A DNA stretch of 64,000 nucleotides, from IMG/VR virus record IMGVR_UViG_3300032315_001715, positions 372,001-436,000 of that record; one strand, given 5' to 3'. Every line of letters starts with the position of its first letter. The first letter of the stretch is position 1. The notes beneath the pieces were generated by a model. The model did no database searches. It saw only the letters and a program-made list of their open reading frames with translations, and was not told the DNA's origin. The translations under genes and the position numbers were made by a program. Of this stretch, positions 11,253 through 40,319 are shown in pieces.

Positions 11253-12043
11253 ATGAACTCAATTCCTAAAACCAAACACGCAGTTATACGAATATGCAAG
11301 TTAGTACTCAACACTGATGCTGACATAACAGAAACTGATGTGTTACATGTTAAACAGATATTTCGAGATTATCTCGAATCTGGCATGTCTCCCAGTGATA
11401 TTAAAAATCAGTACCTCATCGAACATTCAAATTTTGGTATGTTTCTAAAAACATGTTTAAATCTAAAATTGTTAAGCGTCAAGGACGCTATAAACAATTA
11501 CTATAAAAAGAAGGCCGGTCAACGACTGACGCTAAGACCATTTACTATAAACAGTGTTCGTTCTCATTCAATCCGTACTCGATCACGATTATACCCGGAT
11601 ATGAAAAGTTATTAAAACTGGGAATTTATCATGCTACTGATAATCCTGGAGGAGTATGTAGAGATCATATGATCTCAATTGCATATGGATGGAGAAATCA
11701 TATCGCACCGGAGATTATTTCTCATCCATGTAACTGTCAGTTTCTTACTAACTTAGAAAACATAGCGAAAAATGATCGATCGGTCTTAACAGTAGGTGAA
11801 CTCATATATCGTATAAAAAACAATATAATGTCTGCGTCTAGCACAGTTGCTAATCATTTGCCTAAGACACACGAACATAAAGCAAAGATTAGCTCTACTA
11901 ACAGTAGATACATGAGAATAACAAACGGTACACGAAACCTACGGATTCTTAAATCAGATCTCATACCCAACGGATACCGTCGAGGATTTACACGTTCTAA
12001 TAAACTGGTAGGGGTAGAGGGACTCGAACCCCCAATCCGTTAG
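11253..12043 (+). pseudogene. HNH-like endonuclease with NUMOD3-like tail, split by a -1 frameshift near 11510
   Basis: -1 frame is open from GRSTTDAK through RDHMISIAYGW...HPCNCQ...EN. Confidence 0.7.
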
Positions 12044-13599: not shown

Positions 13600-13808
13600 G
13601 GTTCCTGGTAGCAACCACGTGCGCCGTAGCTGACGTGTTAAGCCAAATTGCTTTGACTGATGTTACCTTGACCTGGCGTCCAGGCACGCCGCCCCGCGAC
13701 TATTGCGTCCTCACATCAGGAATGCCATCCTGTATGTGCGGCGCGGGCCCAGTGGTGGATCACACACCTGGCATGGTGTAGACTGATCCAGCAGAACTGG
13801 GGCACATA
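13600..13808 (-). ncRNA. candidate multi-stem structured RNA
   Basis: Nested pairings TGGATCA/TGATCCA, CACATACAGGA/TCCTGATGTG, CGCGCCGC/GCGGCGTG; no ORF. Confidence 0.5.
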
Positions 13809-13814
13809 CTCTAT

Positions 13815-13931
13815 TTACATGCAGAGGTCTTCGTAACGGGTGGTATAACGTCGGTGTTGGCTGACGTCGTATCCAGCGTTCTTGCGATTGGCTAGGATAC
13901 GATCCACCAAGATTTTAATGTAGTTGCTCAT
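13815..13931 (-). CDS. 38-aa small protein MSNYIKILVDRILANRKNAGYDVSQHRRYTTRYEDLCM
   Basis: ATG with AGGA upstream, TAA stop. Confidence 0.55.
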   Translation of the reverse strand: MSNYIKILVDRILANRKNAGYDVSQHRRYTTRYEDLCM

Positions 13932-13955
13932 GTTTGATCCTATCCAAAAAGAAAA

Positions 13956-14033
13956 TGGTCTCGGTGGCAAGATTCGAACTTGCGGTCTTCTGGTCCCAAA
14001 CCAGACGCGATAACCAGGCTTCGCTACACCGAG
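13956..14033 (-). tRNA. tRNA-Pro(TGG)
   Basis: loop TT-TGG-GA, CCA; 5' end overlaps HNH stop codon. Confidence 0.92.
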
Positions 14034-14602
14034 TTTTTGAACTTCTTCAAATATAATTCTATAGCCGATTGAACCATATGTCTATATCGACTATGGACAT
14101 ATTGATGATGTGTTGGGCACATCGGAATCAAGTTAGCTGGGTCATTGTTGTTATGATTGTGGTCATAGTGATGAACTGATACTATCTTGTCCTCACCGCA
14201 GATGATGCATGCCTTTTTGTGGTACTCAAAGCAGGTACTGCGATATTGGTCGTCACTCCAGTTGCCATTATTTTCGCCACGTCGAAAGTGTTTGTTTGCA
14301 CATGATCGACTACAAGTACCTTTTGATTTCTTGTAGTTTTTGACCGGATTATCGCATACCAAACACTTTACTGTATTAACCGGATTCAAATAGCATTCAA
14401 CTTCATGACTGCGTAAATTTGGAACACTAACTAATTTAGTGCAATACTGACAATTTTTCTTAGTTGCGTTGATACTCGCCCATCCTCCGGATCCTTTGTT
14501 GGACAGATGAGATCTTAACGCCTTTGCACTACAATAAATTTTACCATTATTTGGACTCGTAAATGTTCCATCAAGATTTTGATATTGTATAAGGTCTATC
14601 AT
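14024..14602 (-). CDS. HNH endonuclease
   Basis: CIICG...VHHYDHNHNNNDPANLIPMCPTHH, Zn fingers. Confidence 0.92.
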   Translation of the reverse strand: MIDLIQYQNLDGTFTSPNNGKIYCSAKALRSHLSNKGSGGWASINATKKNCQYCTKLVSVPNLRSHEVECYLNPVNTVKCLVCDNPVKNYKKSKGTCSRSCANKHFRRGENNGNWSDDQYRSTCFEYHKKACIICGEDKIVSVHHYDHNHNNNDPANLIPMCPTHHQYVHSRYRHMVQSAIELYLKKFKNSV

Positions 14603-14625
14603 AATGCTATTTATGCTCGGAGCGA

Positions 14626-14661
14626 CAAAGCAGGCGCACTACCAAGCTGTGCTACACCCCG
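14626..14661 (-). pseudogene. 5' half of tRNA-Pro broken in the anticodon
   Basis: CGGGGTGTAGCACAGCTTGGTAGTGCGCCTGCTTTG then unrelated sequence. Confidence 0.85.
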
Positions 14662-14712
14662 TTATTTAATACTACGGCCAGTTGATCGTTTTTGCAAGCA
14701 TATTTACTAACG

Positions 14713-15483
14713 TCAAGCCAATCTTTCCCACCAATCGTCGGAAAAGCCAGCAATTCTTCCGTGCCAGGACGGTCCCCAATGCATGAGATCCCTGGCCAGA
14801 AAGTTTCGCTTTTCACTGCGTCGCAGTGTTTCCATGGAATCGGCCATAGGTGCATACAGTTCAATTCCGTTATCCGTGCAAACGGCTCGCATGGCATCAA
14901 CCGTTCGGATGAATGAGATCCTAATTTCGTCGTCTTCGCTTAGGTGTCGATACAGTCCCAACTCCTCCCCGGTGGTCCACGGACCGAGCCGCCGTATCTT
15001 ACCAGCATCACCAAGCAATTCTCGCCGTCCGGAAAATGCTCCAATGGTATATGCTCGCCGGGGCCGTAGCAGTCCTGCCCAGGATTTCAACATGCGATAT
15101 TGGGTTTCAATGCCGGTGCCAGGCCATGCTAGATTGATGAACGCCCCGCCGATGCGTTGGTTTAGCTTCCATGCCCATGTATCCTCAACATTCAGGCCGA
15201 TTCCAAAGGTAATGCTGCAACCGAGATAGAAGTTCCCGGCACCAGGGGTTAGATCACTGAAATCCAGGGGAGTTCTAAATCCTCGATCATTTGATCGATA
15301 CCTGATGTTGGTCTTGGTCCACCCGCCGGCTATTAACCGTTCGCGGGTCGCCGTGTCGTTCCAGTGCCGATCAAACAGTTCTTCCGTGTCGGTAGCCGTC
15401 CACGGTTGTTCGTGATTAGCTGGCAATGGTCCATGGCCAAACCGATCCGGGTCGCGAGTTGGATCAAACCTAAGGAGATCCAT
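14713..15483 (-). CDS. SGNH-hydrolase-like phage protein
   Basis: GCSITFGIGL, NLAWPGTG, ARDLMHWG. Confidence 0.7.
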   Translation of the reverse strand: MDLLRFDPTRDPDRFGHGPLPANHEQPWTATDTEELFDRHWNDTATRERLIAGGWTKTNIRYRSNDRGFRTPLDFSDLTPGAGNFYLGCSITFGIGLNVEDTWAWKLNQRIGGAFINLAWPGTGIETQYRMLKSWAGLLRPRRAYTIGAFSGRRELLGDAGKIRRLGPWTTGEELGLYRHLSEDDEIRISFIRTVDAMRAVCTDNGIELYAPMADSMETLRRSEKRNFLARDLMHWGPSWHGRIAGFSDDWWERLA

Positions 15484-19895: not shown

Positions 19896-20657
19896 TTACA
19901 CCTTACCGTTTAATTTGCATCGATCAAAATGATGCCGTTTCATGACAGGTCCTTTACCGGTTTTTAGGCAATAGGGACATTGGTATATTTTACCATTAAC
20001 ATGCCTTCCCGACTCAATCAAATTTTTGGTAAATTCTTTACCAAAATGATGAATACCTTTTGCTGTTCTTTGACAAGACGGGTTTCTTTCTCCTAGGAAG
20101 TTATGGGTACCTGCATCAATTCTACGCCTGTTGGATTCGGGCCCTAGGAAGTTATGGGTACCTGCATCAATTCTACGCCTGTTGGATTCAGGCCCTAGGA
20201 GATTATGGGTGCCTGCATCAATTCTGCGCCTGTTGGATTCAGGACCGAGAAAGTTATGGGTTCCGTCTTCTATACGTTTCATATTTGCAGATGGCCCATT
20301 CCAGTGATGGTTACCGATTTTTGATTTTTTTCTTGATGGATTCTGTTCACCAAGAAAATTATGGGTTCCGTCAGCAACCCGTTTGTTTGCAGCAGATCTT
20401 GCAAGCTCTTTGATCTCGTCACCAGTTATATCCAGATACTGAGAAAGATATAGTGCCGCTGCCCAATCTCCTTGATTTAGATGAATTTGATAATGCTCTT
20501 CGGGACTAACGGCTAATAGGTTCGACGGATCATTTTTTGAATGATTACCGTCTATGTGATGTATATGATATGATCTACCTTTTTCATCAATTGGTCTTGG
20601 GCCAAAATTGTTTTCGTAGATCCGTATATGATCGTTATTAGATTTTTTGTCAGACAT
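19896..20657 (-). CDS. HNH endonuclease with GTHNFLG repeats
   Basis: YHIHHIDGNHSKNDPSNL; C-terminal CPYC...HFDRC. Confidence 0.9.
   Translation of the reverse strand: MSDKKSNNDHIRIYENNFGPRPIDEKGRSYHIHHIDGNHSKNDPSNLLAVSPEEHYQIHLNQGDWAAALYLSQYLDITGDEIKELARSAANKRVADGTHNFLGEQNPSRKKSKIGNHHWNGPSANMKRIEDGTHNFLGPESNRRRIDAGTHNLLGPESNRRRIDAGTHNFLGPESNRRRIDAGTHNFLGERNPSCQRTAKGIHHFGKEFTKNLIESGRHVNGKIYQCPYCLKTGKGPVMKRHHFDRCKLNGKV
20092..20263. repeat. 51-bp tandem repeat, about 3.3 copies (NRRRIDAGTHNFLGPES)
   Basis: Direct repeats visible in sequence. Confidence 0.9.
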
Positions 20658-33405: not shown

Positions 33406-33978
33406 TTATTTTTCGATAAAATACAGAGCTGTTTGAATGAATTGCTCTTTATCTTTGACACATTCTTTCCATTCTATTCGAAGTGTTTGCCATCCTTGCT
33501 CTAAAAGCCATGCATCTCGTTTTGCATCACTCTCTCTGGTGTTTTCGTGAGTGCCGCCGTCGATTTCAATGCATTTCTTTATTTCTGGCCAAGCAAAATC
33601 AAGTGAATAAATTCCAAATGGGTATTCCGCAATGTAGTTTTTATTCTCAAATCTTTTATCAATCACAGATTCGAACCACTGCTCTGGATAACTTTTTGGA
33701 CGCCCTTTGAAATTTTTTCCCAAAGTAGGGTATGTCCCCTCCTTCAAACGTCTCAGCATGTGATGTCTGAGCTTGATTTTGGTTTCATCTGAGTGCTTCT
33801 GAGGAGGTCGATGTTTCCTGCTCATCTTTTGAGCTTCGCTTTTAGAACGAGGTGTGAACAATCCATTTTTGATTGCCTTGTTGATCGTGTTCAAGGTTGG
33901 TCCTAATTCTCGCATTGGGACCCCACTATCATATAGGCTCTGTAATTCTTTCCAATTAAACGGAGTTTTGTTTCTCAT
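33406..33978 (-). CDS. DUF559/Vsr-like endonuclease with NUMOD3
   Basis: KHSDETKIKL; YSLDFAW, IEIDGGTH, DAKRDAWLLEQGWQTLRI. Confidence 0.88.
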   Translation of the reverse strand: MRNKTPFNWKELQSLYDSGVPMRELGPTLNTINKAIKNGLFTPRSKSEAQKMSRKHRPPQKHSDETKIKLRHHMLRRLKEGTYPTLGKNFKGRPKSYPEQWFESVIDKRFENKNYIAEYPFGIYSLDFAWPEIKKCIEIDGGTHENTRESDAKRDAWLLEQGWQTLRIEWKECVKDKEQFIQTALYFIEK

Positions 33979-35153: not shown

Positions 35154-35229
35154 TGGTACCTACTGTGGGGATCGAACCCACCTCTAACAGCGTGTCGAGC
35201 TGTCGCCATCCCCAGATGACAAAGCAGGC
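35154..35229 (-). tRNA. tRNA-Val(GAC)
   Basis: loop TC-GAC-AC. Confidence 0.82.
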
Positions 35230-36368: not shown

Positions 36369-37043
36369 TCAACGCCTATTTTTTATCGTTCTTCCTTTGA
36401 TCCATCCGACTGGTATAGGATCAGATTTTTTAATTTTTACAGATTTTTGACCATCTGTTATCCACATTGTGTCAAACTGACTATTGGATTTGCCAAATCC
36501 TCGCCCTTTTGATGATTCGGACATTTTAGATCTAGTTTCAGCCGAATGTGTCTTTCCTTTGAAAGATGCAAATATGTCAGGCGTATATTTTGATTTAATG
36601 GTTTCTTGCCATTTTTTTGAACGATTTGCAACTCTTTCTGTATCTAATAGAAAAAGTCTTAGACCCTCCTTGGCTTTTTCTTCTATCCCTCTAGATTTTG
36701 CTACTTTCATAGCCTTTTGATTTTTTTCTTTTCTTAACGATTCATTTGAATTGATATAACCAAATCCGCCATGTCCTCCTGGACATAAATTATATGTATC
36801 TGGTCTTGCACACATTTCTTCTGTCACAAGTTCTTTTTCTTTGTCGTTCATTTCTTTTTCACAAGAAAAGACGTGTAAGATTTCTTTGGAAAAATTTTCA
36901 ATACCATATTTGTCAATTGCAAGTTTTATGAGCTTGCCAGATCCAAAATATTCATCATTAAGGTCAGCAGTTTTATGCTTTCCTATATAAATCTTGCTGT
37001 TAAGGAGATTAGTAATTTTGTATATTATGAAGAACATAAACAC
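36369..37043 (-). CDS. GIY-YIG homing endonuclease (Seg-like) with NUMOD3
   Basis: IIYKITN...IYIGKH...YFGSG, YNLCPGG, GKTHSAETRSKMS. Confidence 0.95.
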   Translation of the reverse strand: MFMFFIIYKITNLLNSKIYIGKHKTADLNDEYFGSGKLIKLAIDKYGIENFSKEILHVFSCEKEMNDKEKELVTEEMCARPDTYNLCPGGHGGFGYINSNESLRKEKNQKAMKVAKSRGIEEKAKEGLRLFLLDTERVANRSKKWQETIKSKYTPDIFASFKGKTHSAETRSKMSESSKGRGFGKSNSQFDTMWITDGQKSVKIKKSDPIPVGWIKGRTIKNRR

Positions 37044-37380: not shown

Positions 37381-37968
37381 CTATATCAACCCTAAACTTT
37401 TGAGCTTGGTTTTATCCCATACCTCGCAGACGACATCTGGATATAACTGGCGCCAAAGCTCGAACTTTTCTTTGTTTGCTTTTCGCCAATAACCCTTGAC
37501 CTCTATGATTTTTCCGCAGGATAAAACAAAGTCAGGTCTGTATGACCTATTTTTTGATAACAGGAAAACCTTCTTGCTGTAATCCCATTTGATACCTTGG
37601 CTATCGAGGTAAGACGCAACTTTCACCTCCCAGGATGAATCCATCCTGATGCCATTATAATAACTTTGTCTATCTCCTCTATGTTTGGCGTTATTGTTAC
37701 CTCTCATAGATTCGGATATTTTAGCTTTGGTGTCATCGGTATGTTTCACCAACGAATTGAGCTTTCTGCCTTTTATCTTTAAGGCATGCCCTAGAATCCT
37801 TGAATCTGTTTCCTTGCTAAGTCCTTTGTTCCAGCTAACATGCGCTGTCTTGAGACGTGCTCGATAACCGGGACATTTGTAATAAACTGGTTGGCAGCAC
37901 CACCCGCTCCATTTAGAGCGAGGTGGATACGAAGCGGTGTCTCCGCAATACTTGCATGTGTTGTTCAT
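37381..37968 (-). CDS. PD-(D/E)xK endonuclease with NUMOD3
   Basis: KHTDDTKAKIS; DSSWE, YRPDFVL...IEVKGY. Confidence 0.88.
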   Translation of the reverse strand: MNNTCKYCGDTASYPPRSKWSGWCCQPVYYKCPGYRARLKTAHVSWNKGLSKETDSRILGHALKIKGRKLNSLVKHTDDTKAKISESMRGNNNAKHRGDRQSYYNGIRMDSSWEVKVASYLDSQGIKWDYSKKVFLLSKNRSYRPDFVLSCGKIIEVKGYWRKANKEKFELWRQLYPDVVCEVWDKTKLKSLGLI

Positions 37969-37984
37969 GAAAGTATTTATGCAA

Positions 37985-38021
37985 ACAGTCTGCTCCAACC
38001 CTCCAACGTTGGCGCTTCCCC
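37985..38021 (-). pseudogene. 5' half of tRNA-Tyr broken in the anticodon (3' remnant at 37359-37380)
   Basis: GGGGAAGCGCCAACGTTGGAGGGTTGGAGCAGACTGT; after the ORF stop AATCTG...CCCCACCA. Confidence 0.75.
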
Positions 38022-39562: not shown

Positions 39563-40150
39563 TTAACGAGGAGCAAACGGATCTATTATCACCGGGCAAT
39601 CGCCTCGTTGCATGATGTTTTCATCATGTAGATCAAAATCAATTGCTGAATTGGTACTAACAACATTAGCCAGTAGCTCGATTGCATGTAAGAAATCCGG
39701 CCATTTTTTAATGAAATGCTCGATGTGAGATTTGAGTTTCTCGTCAGTCATGTTGCTGAGATAGTCTCGCCATTTAGGCTCGTCGATGTATCTCAAAAAC
39801 CAATCAGTTGCTATATGATCAGGGTCGGTTCGAACATATTCCCAGGGTGACAGCATTTCTAATCTCAATGCACGGATACCTGGGACCAAAGTAACCGGTA
39901 ATCCTCTAAACTTTGGAAAATGTGGATTATCCTGATGTTTTCGGGCTAGTTCGACAAATTTAGCGTAACCTATATCTGCCTCGTCGTACAGCTTTAGAAC
40001 ATAATTCAAGTTCGGATGTTGCCAAACACTGCCAAATGTGCCGTCTCCCAGCATTTCGAATCCATGCTTGAGAAGCTTTTTCTTCGCGCTGTCTGTGTTT
40101 GTGATGTCTTGTCGCAGGCTATCTGCGCCCACAAGTTCATTGAGTTTCAT
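39563..40150 (-). CDS. protein-kinase-like protein
   Basis: LGDGTFGSVW, VLK, DLHDENIM, IIDP. Confidence 0.85.
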   Translation of the reverse strand: MKLNELVGADSLRQDITNTDSAKKKLLKHGFEMLGDGTFGSVWQHPNLNYVLKLYDEADIGYAKFVELARKHQDNPHFPKFRGLPVTLVPGIRALRLEMLSPWEYVRTDPDHIATDWFLRYIDEPKWRDYLSNMTDEKLKSHIEHFIKKWPDFLHAIELLANVVSTNSAIDFDLHDENIMQRGDCPVIIDPFAPR

Positions 40151-40162
40151 GATGCTATTTAT

Positions 40163-40237
40163 TGGTCAGCGTGGGGAATTTTGCGATCCCGGCCTCCAGG
40201 CTCCCGACCTGGCACTCTTCTCCTGAGCTACACGCTG
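40163..40237 (-). tRNA. tRNA-Pro(GGG)
   Basis: C1-G72, loop TC-GGG-AG. Confidence 0.8.
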
Positions 40238-40244
40238 TTGTAAA

Positions 40245-40319
40245 TGGTCAGGGAGGGGAATTTCGAAATCCCGGCTTCCAGGTTCCAGGCCTGGCACTCT
40301 GCCTCTGAGCTACTCCCTG
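40245..40319 (-). tRNA. tRNA-Pro(TGG)
   Basis: C1-G72, loop CC-TGG-AA. Confidence 0.82.

Follow-up and report, generated by a model that had tools for sequence, protein, structure and literature searches.

An HNH nuclease gene joined to a spare tRNA-Pro, a probable homing cassette in the tRNA-Pro(UGG) gene of a phage

Introduction

Why should a phage genome hold one half of a transfer RNA (tRNA) gene for proline, directly followed by a nuclease gene and a second, complete tRNA-Pro? This question is raised by a locus in a 64,000-nucleotide (nt) stretch of DNA, hereafter the window, which comprises bases 372001-436000 of the virus record IMGVR_UViG_3300032315_001715, a single record of 452,799 base pairs (bp) with 49% guanine plus cytosine (GC). 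The genome encodes a major capsid protein of T4 type (Pfam Gp23, 315 bits), and the window contains 40 tRNA genes as called by ARAGORN, every one of them on the minus strand. A first-pass annotation had read the locus as a selfish cassette that destroys its target tRNA gene and complements it with an immune copy. Comparison with related loci supports the cassette reading: a mobile unit of nuclease plus spare tRNA has probably invaded the resident tRNA-Pro(UGG) gene of this giant phage by homing, and this HNH cassette appears to be a new form of free-standing homing endonuclease in phage tRNA clusters.

Structure of the locus

The four elements that the first-pass annotation had placed in succession, i.e. 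a tRNA-Pro half, an ATAAATA box, an HNH open reading frame (ORF) and a complete tRNA-Pro(TGG), are all present on the minus strand, and the box lies within a short spacer that forms the left end of the cassette:

14626-14661, minus strand: orphan 5' half of tRNA-Pro(UGG), 36 nt, tRNA positions 1-35, recognised by its identity to metagenome contig L210, by pattern matches, Rfam and nhmmer
14603-14625, minus strand: spacer and left end of the cassette, 23 nt, TCG-CTCCGAG-C-ATAAATA-GCATT, recognised by a motif common to other cassettes
14024-14602, minus strand: free-standing HNH ORF of 192 amino acids (aa), recognised by motif, fold model and homologues
13956-14033, minus strand: carried complete tRNA-Pro(UGG), C1-G72, A73, with encoded CCA, called by ARAGORN (Rfam 67.1 bits)
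13956-14625, minus strand: entire cassette, 670 bp, in place of positions 36-76 of the resident tRNA-Pro, delimited by homology to L210 (stopping at 14626 and resuming at or just after 13956) and by a GC trough

The orphan half consists of the acceptor strand, the D-arm and the 5' strand of the anticodon stem (CCTGC) followed by TT-TG, and it ends after the second anticodon base, i.e. within the anticodon, where the nuclease gene had been placed by the earlier reading. Scored as a truncated match, it covers positions 1-34 of the Rfam tRNA model with 16.4 bits and an expectation value (E) of 0.38, which is weak alone, and positions 1-36 of a tRNA-Pro profile in nhmmer (E 1e-3). Despite the weak Rfam score, sequence comparison identifies it unambiguously as a piece of tRNA-Pro(UGG), because a pattern built from the half with three positions freed matched tRNA-Pro(UGG) in 120 of 120 bacterial loci, all starting with C1, and because it is 100% identical to the corresponding part of L210. 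A reading as tRNA-Thr(UGU) via TTTGT was rejected, given that these natural matches and L210 all run on as Pro(UGG). No match to the half or its partner above chance was found elsewhere in the genome for the missing 3' half of the resident tRNA.

At the other end of the cassette, the last three sense codons and the TAG stop of the HNH ORF (14026-14024) lie inside the complete tRNA, with the stop formed by tRNA positions 8-10 and an overlap of 10 nt between the two genes. Spacer and nuclease gene together have 37.8% GC compared to 53% in both flanks, and the cassette stands out as a trough of 36-44%.

Could the two pieces still be expressed as one tRNA, either across a group I intron with the nuclease as its ORF or by trans-joining of a split tRNA? 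The break does lie in the anticodon, and the anticodon loop is where introns of bacterial tRNAs are located, some of which can encode homing endonucleases. However, the strands CGGGGTG (acceptor) and CCTGC (anticodon stem) of the half are unable to pair with the 3' strands CACCGAG and CCAGA of the downstream tRNA, and the two are therefore pieces of different genes. Moreover, the downstream tRNA is complete and has a 5' half of its own, non-coding sequence is limited to the 23 nt upstream of the ORF with none downstream, and no intron or ribozyme family, Intron_gpI included, was detected by Rfam in 13700-14900 even at E <= 10. We rejected this explanation on the missing ribozyme match and the non-pairing strands, and regard it as extremely improbable.

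Empty site and related loci

A homologue with 92% identity to the ORF adjoining the half (14713-15483) is encoded on L210, a metagenome contig of 2.8 kilobases that was found only through a protein cluster database; the GenBank phage collection and IMG/VR contained no relatives of the flanking ORFs, and an exact search of IMG/VR with the orphan half gave no match. L210 aligns with window positions 16342-14712 at 82.8% and 14030-13601 at 82.1% nucleotide identity, and between the aligned blocks it has a single uninterrupted tRNA-Pro(UGG) and no HNH gene. Window positions 14663-14626 match the first 36 nt of this tRNA gene and the preceding 2 nt with 100% identity (38 aligned nt), and homology picks up again directly past the CCA of the downstream tRNA in the window. 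By this alignment, the window differs from its nuclease-free relative by 670 bp (spacer, HNH gene and a foreign tRNA-Pro) that replace tRNA positions 36-76. The downstream tRNA, already described as divergent in the first-pass annotation, differs from the resident tRNA of L210 at 23 aligned positions and by one extra D-loop base. If the half evolved neutrally at the divergence of the flanks, the complete lack of changes in its 36 nt would have a probability of ~1e-3, so that either the insertion is recent or the half is constrained.

Other relatives seem to represent further stages. In the more distant contigs L211 and L212, the locus harbours a single tRNA-Pro of the carried type, with neither the nuclease nor the half. 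As in L211, different sequence lies ahead of a cassette-type tRNA on one 830-nt contig in run X3 of the source metagenome. The closest nuclease homologue (67% identity) is encoded by L214, in which the half has decayed further. L214 aligns with window positions 14664-13817 at 72%, and its carried tRNA is 95% identical to the tRNA of L211. Judged by their gene content, L210 and the window together with L214 and L211-L212 look like the life-cycle stages of a homing endonuclease, namely naive, invaded, and nuclease-free with a replaced tRNA, without implying an order of events. No relative was found that carries the half without the HNH gene. A search for a second pair of empty and filled sites, made with the exact sequence of the orphan half of the L139 cassette, returned filled copies only.

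A second indel is located at the same junction, where L210 possesses a NADAR-domain gene (1680-2195, between a 256-aa ORF and the tRNA-Pro) and the window only 51 nt (14662-14712).

Distribution of the nuclease family

We annotated ORFs, tRNAs (ARAGORN) and partial tRNA-Pro genes (nhmmer with a profile of 56 tRNA-Pro genes) in 9 loci retrieved by exact protein look-up and in a further 80 taken from IMG/VR; removal of near-duplicates left 69 loci. A complete tRNA-Pro(UGG) was located at the 3' end of the nuclease ORF in 41 of the 69 loci and overlapped by the ORF in 38 of these 41. In 13 loci the stop codon ends at tRNA position 10 (TAG as U8-A9-G10, the type seen in the window), and in 17 others it ends at position 15. 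Twelve of the 41 loci have an orphan tRNA-Pro 5' fragment upstream as well, ending at profile positions 27-47 and mostly at 35-39, i.e. in the anticodon loop, while two have a full upstream copy. Another 12 of the 69 loci have a complete tRNA-Pro upstream only, 35-95 nt before the ATG, an arrangement shared by the cultured jumbo phages Serratia phage BF and Xanthomonas phage XbC2.

Altogether, tRNA-Pro is immediately adjacent to the nuclease in 54 of the 69 loci (78%), compared to a share of 14% for Pro among all tRNAs there. From these neighbourhoods, the nuclease family is tied to tRNA-Pro(UGG), with the layout in the window as one instance of a recurring architecture. Likewise, the orphan half is not peculiar to the window genome and can be regarded as a recurring, slowly decaying by-product of the way in which this family inserts.

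Mobility and cassette boundaries

Evidence of mobility comes from contigs that share nothing but the cassette. In L135, L136, L138, L139/L141 and L142, the sole common DNA is a segment of 530-660 bp with 87-95% identity. Its left boundary directly follows the anticodon loop of the orphan half (TTTGGGA, followed by AAATCTCG...), and its right boundary lies at the tRNA-Pro 3' end or just past it. The flanks are unrelated and the orphan halves are mutually different. The same cassette has therefore been inserted at one position into several different resident tRNA-Pro genes, with the 5' halves of the recipients retained. A unit with such edges is found in many phage tRNA arrays that are otherwise unrelated.

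The left end of the window cassette is also found elsewhere. Its CTCCGAG-C-ATAAATA-G is common to cassettes on L121, L125, L130, L132 and L152, and these unrelated contigs and the window spacer share the motif CTCCGAGCATAAATA(G/A) N4-5 ATG. The CTCCGAG at 14622-14616 (minus strand) looks like the fossil 3' acceptor strand of a cassette-type tRNA-Pro, and in L125 this stretch is still able to pair with a CTCGGAG upstream. The carried tRNAs are of a recognisable type as well, often with the acceptor stem CTCGG.../...CCGAG. The one in the window has its nearest relatives among the ORF-overlapped tRNAs of L196, L214, L216 and L145 (13-15% different) and is less close to the resident tRNA of the window lineage, and across the family, distances between the HNH proteins are correlated with those between the attached tRNAs (Mantel r = 0.26, reached by 2 of 2000 permutations). 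The element has several hallmarks of a free-standing homing endonuclease: an empty site exists, its edges are sharp in unrelated contexts, its composition is foreign and the ORF has its own start outside any intron or intein.

This evidence also bears on a simpler origin by tandem duplication and decay, in which an unrelated nuclease landed by chance between two adjacent tRNA-Pro genes and the upstream copy lost its 3' half, all without any targeting of tRNAs. Tandem or multiple tRNA-Pro genes do occur near homologues in L137, L161, L164, L188 and Xanthomonas phage XbC2, and tRNA arrays in general often contain HNH genes (PMC5966550). Such an origin is nevertheless quite unlikely, as L210 has only one tRNA-Pro, the 5' half of which equals the orphan of the window, and the downstream tRNA is of a foreign type found in cassettes on unrelated contigs. 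Furthermore, breakpoints recur in the anticodon loop across independent lineages with sharp cassette edges, and the frequent adjacency of tRNA-Pro far exceeds its share among the tRNAs of these loci.

The nuclease

More than 170 homologues of the HNH protein were found in metagenomes, most of them full-length and with ~50-67% identity, and homologues in GenBank phages are annotated as 'hypothetical protein' or 'HNH endonuclease'. Across 37 homologues, 31 residues are invariant, including C132, C135, H144, H145, N157, C162, H165, H166 and H170. The core motif CxxC...HH...N...CPxHH...H is invariant among them and completely present in the window protein; C132, C135, C162 and H165 form a zinc-binding CxxC...CxxH pair that flanks the HNH core, and the N-terminal part contains two more invariant clusters of CxxC/H type. 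An AlphaFold model (mean predicted local distance difference test score 86.9, predicted template modelling score 0.41, leaving the packing of the domains uncertain) has zinc-finger-like modules ahead of a predicted beta-beta-alpha core with strands at 142-145 and 158-161 and a helix at 163-169.

In Foldseek, this core matches the HNH domains of Cap5 from a cyclic-oligonucleotide-based antiphage signalling system (CBASS), of EcoKMcrA and of T5 SciA with a probability of ~1 and weak E-values (>=0.018), and the Foldseek E-values overall were no better than 7.5e-3. Sequence profiles of the IscB HNH (E 0.004) and of a TRAF-type zinc finger match the protein, and scores for the Pfam HNH families stay below their thresholds (HNH_2 with 16.9 bits at a cut-off of 21, HNH_3 with 14.8 at 24.8). 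Because the family is divergent, its HNH membership rests on motif and fold. There was no match to a GIY-YIG domain in the ORF. The 192-aa protein is thus predicted to be composed of an N-terminal zinc-finger-like region and a C-terminal HNH nuclease with intact catalytic residues.

What would such an enzyme attack? It might act as a toxin at the RNA level or against the host, cleaving host tRNA-Pro or its genes, with the linked tRNA-Pro as a resistant substitute for the phage and mobility as a secondary trait. The tight and widespread linkage of a nuclease with a divergent tRNA of the same isotype would fit this role, host genes could be recognised too given that the orphan half closely resembles bacterial tRNA-Pro, and it is documented that phage tRNAs can stand in for host tRNAs that have been cleaved (PMC11555353; PMC13096335). 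On the other hand, HNH domains of the Cap5, McrA and IscB type are deoxyribonucleases, and the scars in the DNA fit a cut followed by repair: the half breaks off in the anticodon loop, a relative has an empty site, and an identical cassette is surrounded by unrelated flanks elsewhere. We therefore consider the toxin and antidote explanation improbable as an account of the locus, although the two readings are compatible.

A promoter-like box

The ATAAATA box is located at 14614-14608 (minus strand), 5 nt upstream of the HNH ATG, and reads CATAAATA, a 7/8 match to the TATAAATA -10 box of T4 late promoters. Throughout the genome, ATAAATA occurs 100 times, 25 times with an ATG 4-5 nt downstream, and ATAAATA-N4-5-ATG heads more than 20 other ORFs longer than 100 aa and of ordinary GC content, three of them inside the tRNA array (example sites at window positions 11253, 21963, 33196, 33978, 37968, 40150 and 45443). 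Because of this recurrence and the T4-type Gp23 in the same genome, a T4-late-type promoter, as assumed from the first, is a reasonable and plausible reading of the sequence. The spacing of the box would put the start of the transcript at or next to the ATG and thereby produce a leaderless HNH messenger RNA (mRNA), and the more than 20 similarly headed ORFs suggest T4-late-type promoters that might give leaderless or near-leaderless mRNAs in this phage more widely.

Nearly the same ATAAATAGCAT box is found at the start of a 195-aa ORF at 39563-40150 (minus strand) with the kinase-like motifs GxGxFGxV, DLHxxN and IIDPF, and the box is therefore a signal of the phage itself. This ORF, which follows a tRNA-Pro-like gene, was rejected as a candidate for a second nuclease in view of its kinase-like sequence and the absence of any Pfam match.

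Differences between carried and resident tRNAs

A specific cut site and immunity of the carried copy appear somewhat more probable than not. Carried copies and orphan halves differ systematically at acceptor positions 2-3: the acceptor strand starts with CGG in 13 of 16 orphan halves and in 8 of 45 carried tRNAs (Fisher p = 1e-5), and 24 of the 45 carried tRNAs start with CTC. The acceptor stem is therefore a candidate resistance feature of the carried tRNA.

The other tRNA-Pro(UGG) of the genome lies at 40245-40319 (minus strand) in the window and has the anticodon loop CCUGGAA (C32, C33, A37) instead of UUUGGGA, the absence of U33 being unusual. This gene would be no target if the HNH enzyme reads the anticodon loop. 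Directly after it and directly before a ATAAATAGCATC-ATG start lies a tRNA-like gene at 40166-40237 (minus strand) that was not called by ARAGORN but exceeds the gathering score of the Rfam tRNA model with 37.6 bits; it resembles a tRNA-Pro(GGG), with the loop UCGGGAG (C33) and an aberrant T-loop.

Proposed mechanism

How would such a cassette move? In a mixed infection, the nuclease would recognise a cassette-free tRNA-Pro(UGG) gene and nick or cut it in or beside the anticodon loop (positions ~35-39), and the break would be repaired from the cassette-bearing genome. The homology needed for this would be tRNA-Pro sequence alone, with the 5' half on the left and the 3' part of the tRNA on the right, which would allow entry into any tRNA array, whatever the neighbouring genes. 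The recipient would retain its own 5' half as an orphan and acquire both the nuclease and a working tRNA-Pro, so that the insertion would cost little. Differences between the carried and an ordinary tRNA-Pro, e.g. an acceptor strand with CTC... versus CGG... or changes in the D-arm, would prevent the carried copy from being cut again. The overlap of ORF and tRNA would lock the nuclease to its rescue gene, as recombination could not part the two without truncating the ORF. Later, the orphan half would decay and the nuclease might be lost, with the cassette-type tRNA remaining, as in L211 and L212. It is also conceivable, as a speculation, that the cut of ribonuclease P (RNase P) at the 5' end of the tRNA removes the stop codon from the HNH mRNA and thereby couples the two genes in their regulation.

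In its fullest form, this would describe a natural, isotype-specific home-and-rescue drive: a zinc-finger/HNH enzyme targets the anticodon-loop region of tRNA-Pro(UGG) and hops between unrelated phages via tRNA homology alone, a resistant tRNA-Pro supplies the stop codon (U8-A9-G10 or in the D-loop), RNase P processing down-regulates the nuclease, and the whole acts as a major route for the replacement and spread of tRNA-Pro alleles. We put this forward tentatively, as a combination that falls slightly short of being probable.

Besides the weak E-values and sub-threshold Pfam scores reported above, several observations weigh against a homing cassette with an immune tRNA. About a fifth of the loci (13 of 69) have no adjacent tRNA-Pro, and in one sub-family (L181, L201-L208, Serratia phage BF and Xanthomonas phage XbC2) the nuclease lies ~60 nt downstream of an intact tRNA-Pro, so that not every member disrupts its target. 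The left junction in the window, after position 35 (TCGCT...), is shorter than the commonest one after position 38 (AAATCTCG...), and a secondary deletion or an imprecise event must therefore be assumed. No cassette-free variant was present in the assembled contigs of 4 runs of the freshwater source metagenome, although contigs drop rare variants. With regard to immunity, the CTC/CGG difference could be a side effect of dual coding with the C-terminus of the ORF. Finally, the anticodon stem of the resident target in the window (CCTGC/GCAGG) recurs in the carried tRNAs of L145, L148 and L121, and for this reason the anticodon stem was rejected as a general determinant of immunity.

Two members of the sub-family next to intact tRNA-Pro genes belong to cultured jumbo phages: L223 (Serratia phage BF, 310225-311046) and L224 (Xanthomonas phage XbC2, 314620-315485) encode C-terminal HNH homologues ~63 nt downstream of a tRNA-Pro(UGG), and in Serratia phage BF a pseudo-tRNA is annotated between this tRNA and the HNH homologue. 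Both phages might serve as experimental systems for this sub-family.

Comparison with known systems

Free-standing homing endonucleases normally rely on flanking homology between related genomes, and homing endonucleases spare essential genes by an intergenic position or within self-splicing introns. The HNH family appears to have found a third solution, namely to insert into a conserved tRNA gene and to bring along a complete spare with the ORF fused to it.

The nearest characterised system is SegB of phage T4, a free-standing nuclease in the tRNA cluster that cuts tRNA genes (PMC2330249). Like the HNH cassette, SegB stands free in a phage tRNA array, reads tRNA gene sequence and is absent from close relatives (PMC2330249, PMC13096335), and it drives the preferential inheritance of itself and the neighbouring tRNA genes and is widely co-located with tRNAs (PMC2330249, PMC13096335). 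In contrast to the HNH cassette, SegB is of the GIY-YIG fold, reads the universal T-psi-C motif without isotype preference and sits between tRNA genes without splitting any of them, and neither an orphan half nor a carried replacement copy nor an overlap of ORF and tRNA has been described for it.

HNH nucleases are likewise known from the tRNA region of T5 as nickases. HNH genes are common in tRNA arrays, e.g. in cluster M mycobacteriophages and in tRNA array units (PMC5966550), and the nucleases scattered in these phage and mycobacterial arrays are thought to generate diversity of the tRNA repertoire. Unlike the specificity and layout found here, these reports concern co-location only (PMC5966550). 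A full-text literature search yielded no description of an HNH family dedicated to one isotype, of anticodon-loop insertion or orphan halves beside a homing endonuclease, of a carried replacement tRNA or of a stop codon formed by positions 8-10 or 13-15 of a tRNA.

More distant parallels exist for single aspects of the cassette. Group I introns in the anticodon loops of tRNAs carry homing endonucleases, for instance the enzyme I-Ssp6803I of the cyanobacterial tRNA-fMet intron. These share with the HNH cassette the target, i.e. the anticodon loop of a tRNA gene, and a host gene that is kept functional, but they retain function by RNA splicing, whereas the HNH cassette has no ribozyme and provides a second complete gene copy instead. 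Integrative elements that target tRNA genes also carry tRNA sequence, a duplicated segment in their phage attachment site (attP), and leave a functional gene behind. However, they use an integrase and duplicate the 3' part of the tRNA, while the HNH cassette carries a whole tRNA and leaves a 5' half; no integrase-like ORF was present beside the cassette. Synthetic cleave-and-rescue or home-and-rescue drives are engineered Cas9 systems in insects. Their logic resembles that of the HNH cassette, in that the nuclease disrupting a needed gene is physically coupled to a recoded version of this gene that resists cleavage. The HNH cassette differs as a natural, protein-guided phage element, and resistance of its rescue copy is a candidate property.

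If the proposed mechanism holds true, it would explain both the spread of one nuclease family through the tRNA arrays of unrelated phages and the occurrence of orphan tRNA halves and pseudo-tRNAs in phage genomes. It would further provide a mechanism for the turnover and horizontal spread of phage tRNA alleles and a natural counterpart of engineered cleave-and-rescue gene drives, as well as a compact zinc-finger/HNH enzyme whose target, roughly 20-40 bp in length, could be predicted.

The tRNA array and further observations

Besides the 192-aa HNH protein, four more homing-endonuclease-like ORFs were recognised by their domains in or beside the tRNA array, which thus appears heavily colonised by such genes:

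19896-20657, minus strand: homing-endonuclease-like ORF with HNH_3
33406-33978, minus strand: homing-endonuclease-like ORF with DUF559 (Vsr-like)
36369-37043, minus strand: homing-endonuclease-like ORF with SegE-like GIY-YIG and NUMOD3
37381-37998, minus strand: homing-endonuclease-like ORF with NUMOD3 and phage endonuclease I

A 30-nt fragment at 35154-35183 (minus strand), located between two tRNA-Val copies, has 90% identity to the 3' part of tRNA-Val(UAC) (positions 47-76) and is possibly a further remnant of a tRNA gene.

The genome uses the standard genetic code. An alternative code was rejected, as TAG is the stop codon of 74 of 456 long ORFs and treating it as a sense codon opens no more frames than the same change made for TAA or TGA. 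Beyond the window, at C1:321051-321206 (plus strand) of the genome, there are two tandem tRNA(CUA) genes, i.e. amber suppressors, and the HNH gene itself ends with TAG. Also beyond the window, ARAGORN called a permuted transfer-messenger RNA-like gene with the tag peptide AANDNAAFENELLAA at C1:111695-112033 (minus strand).

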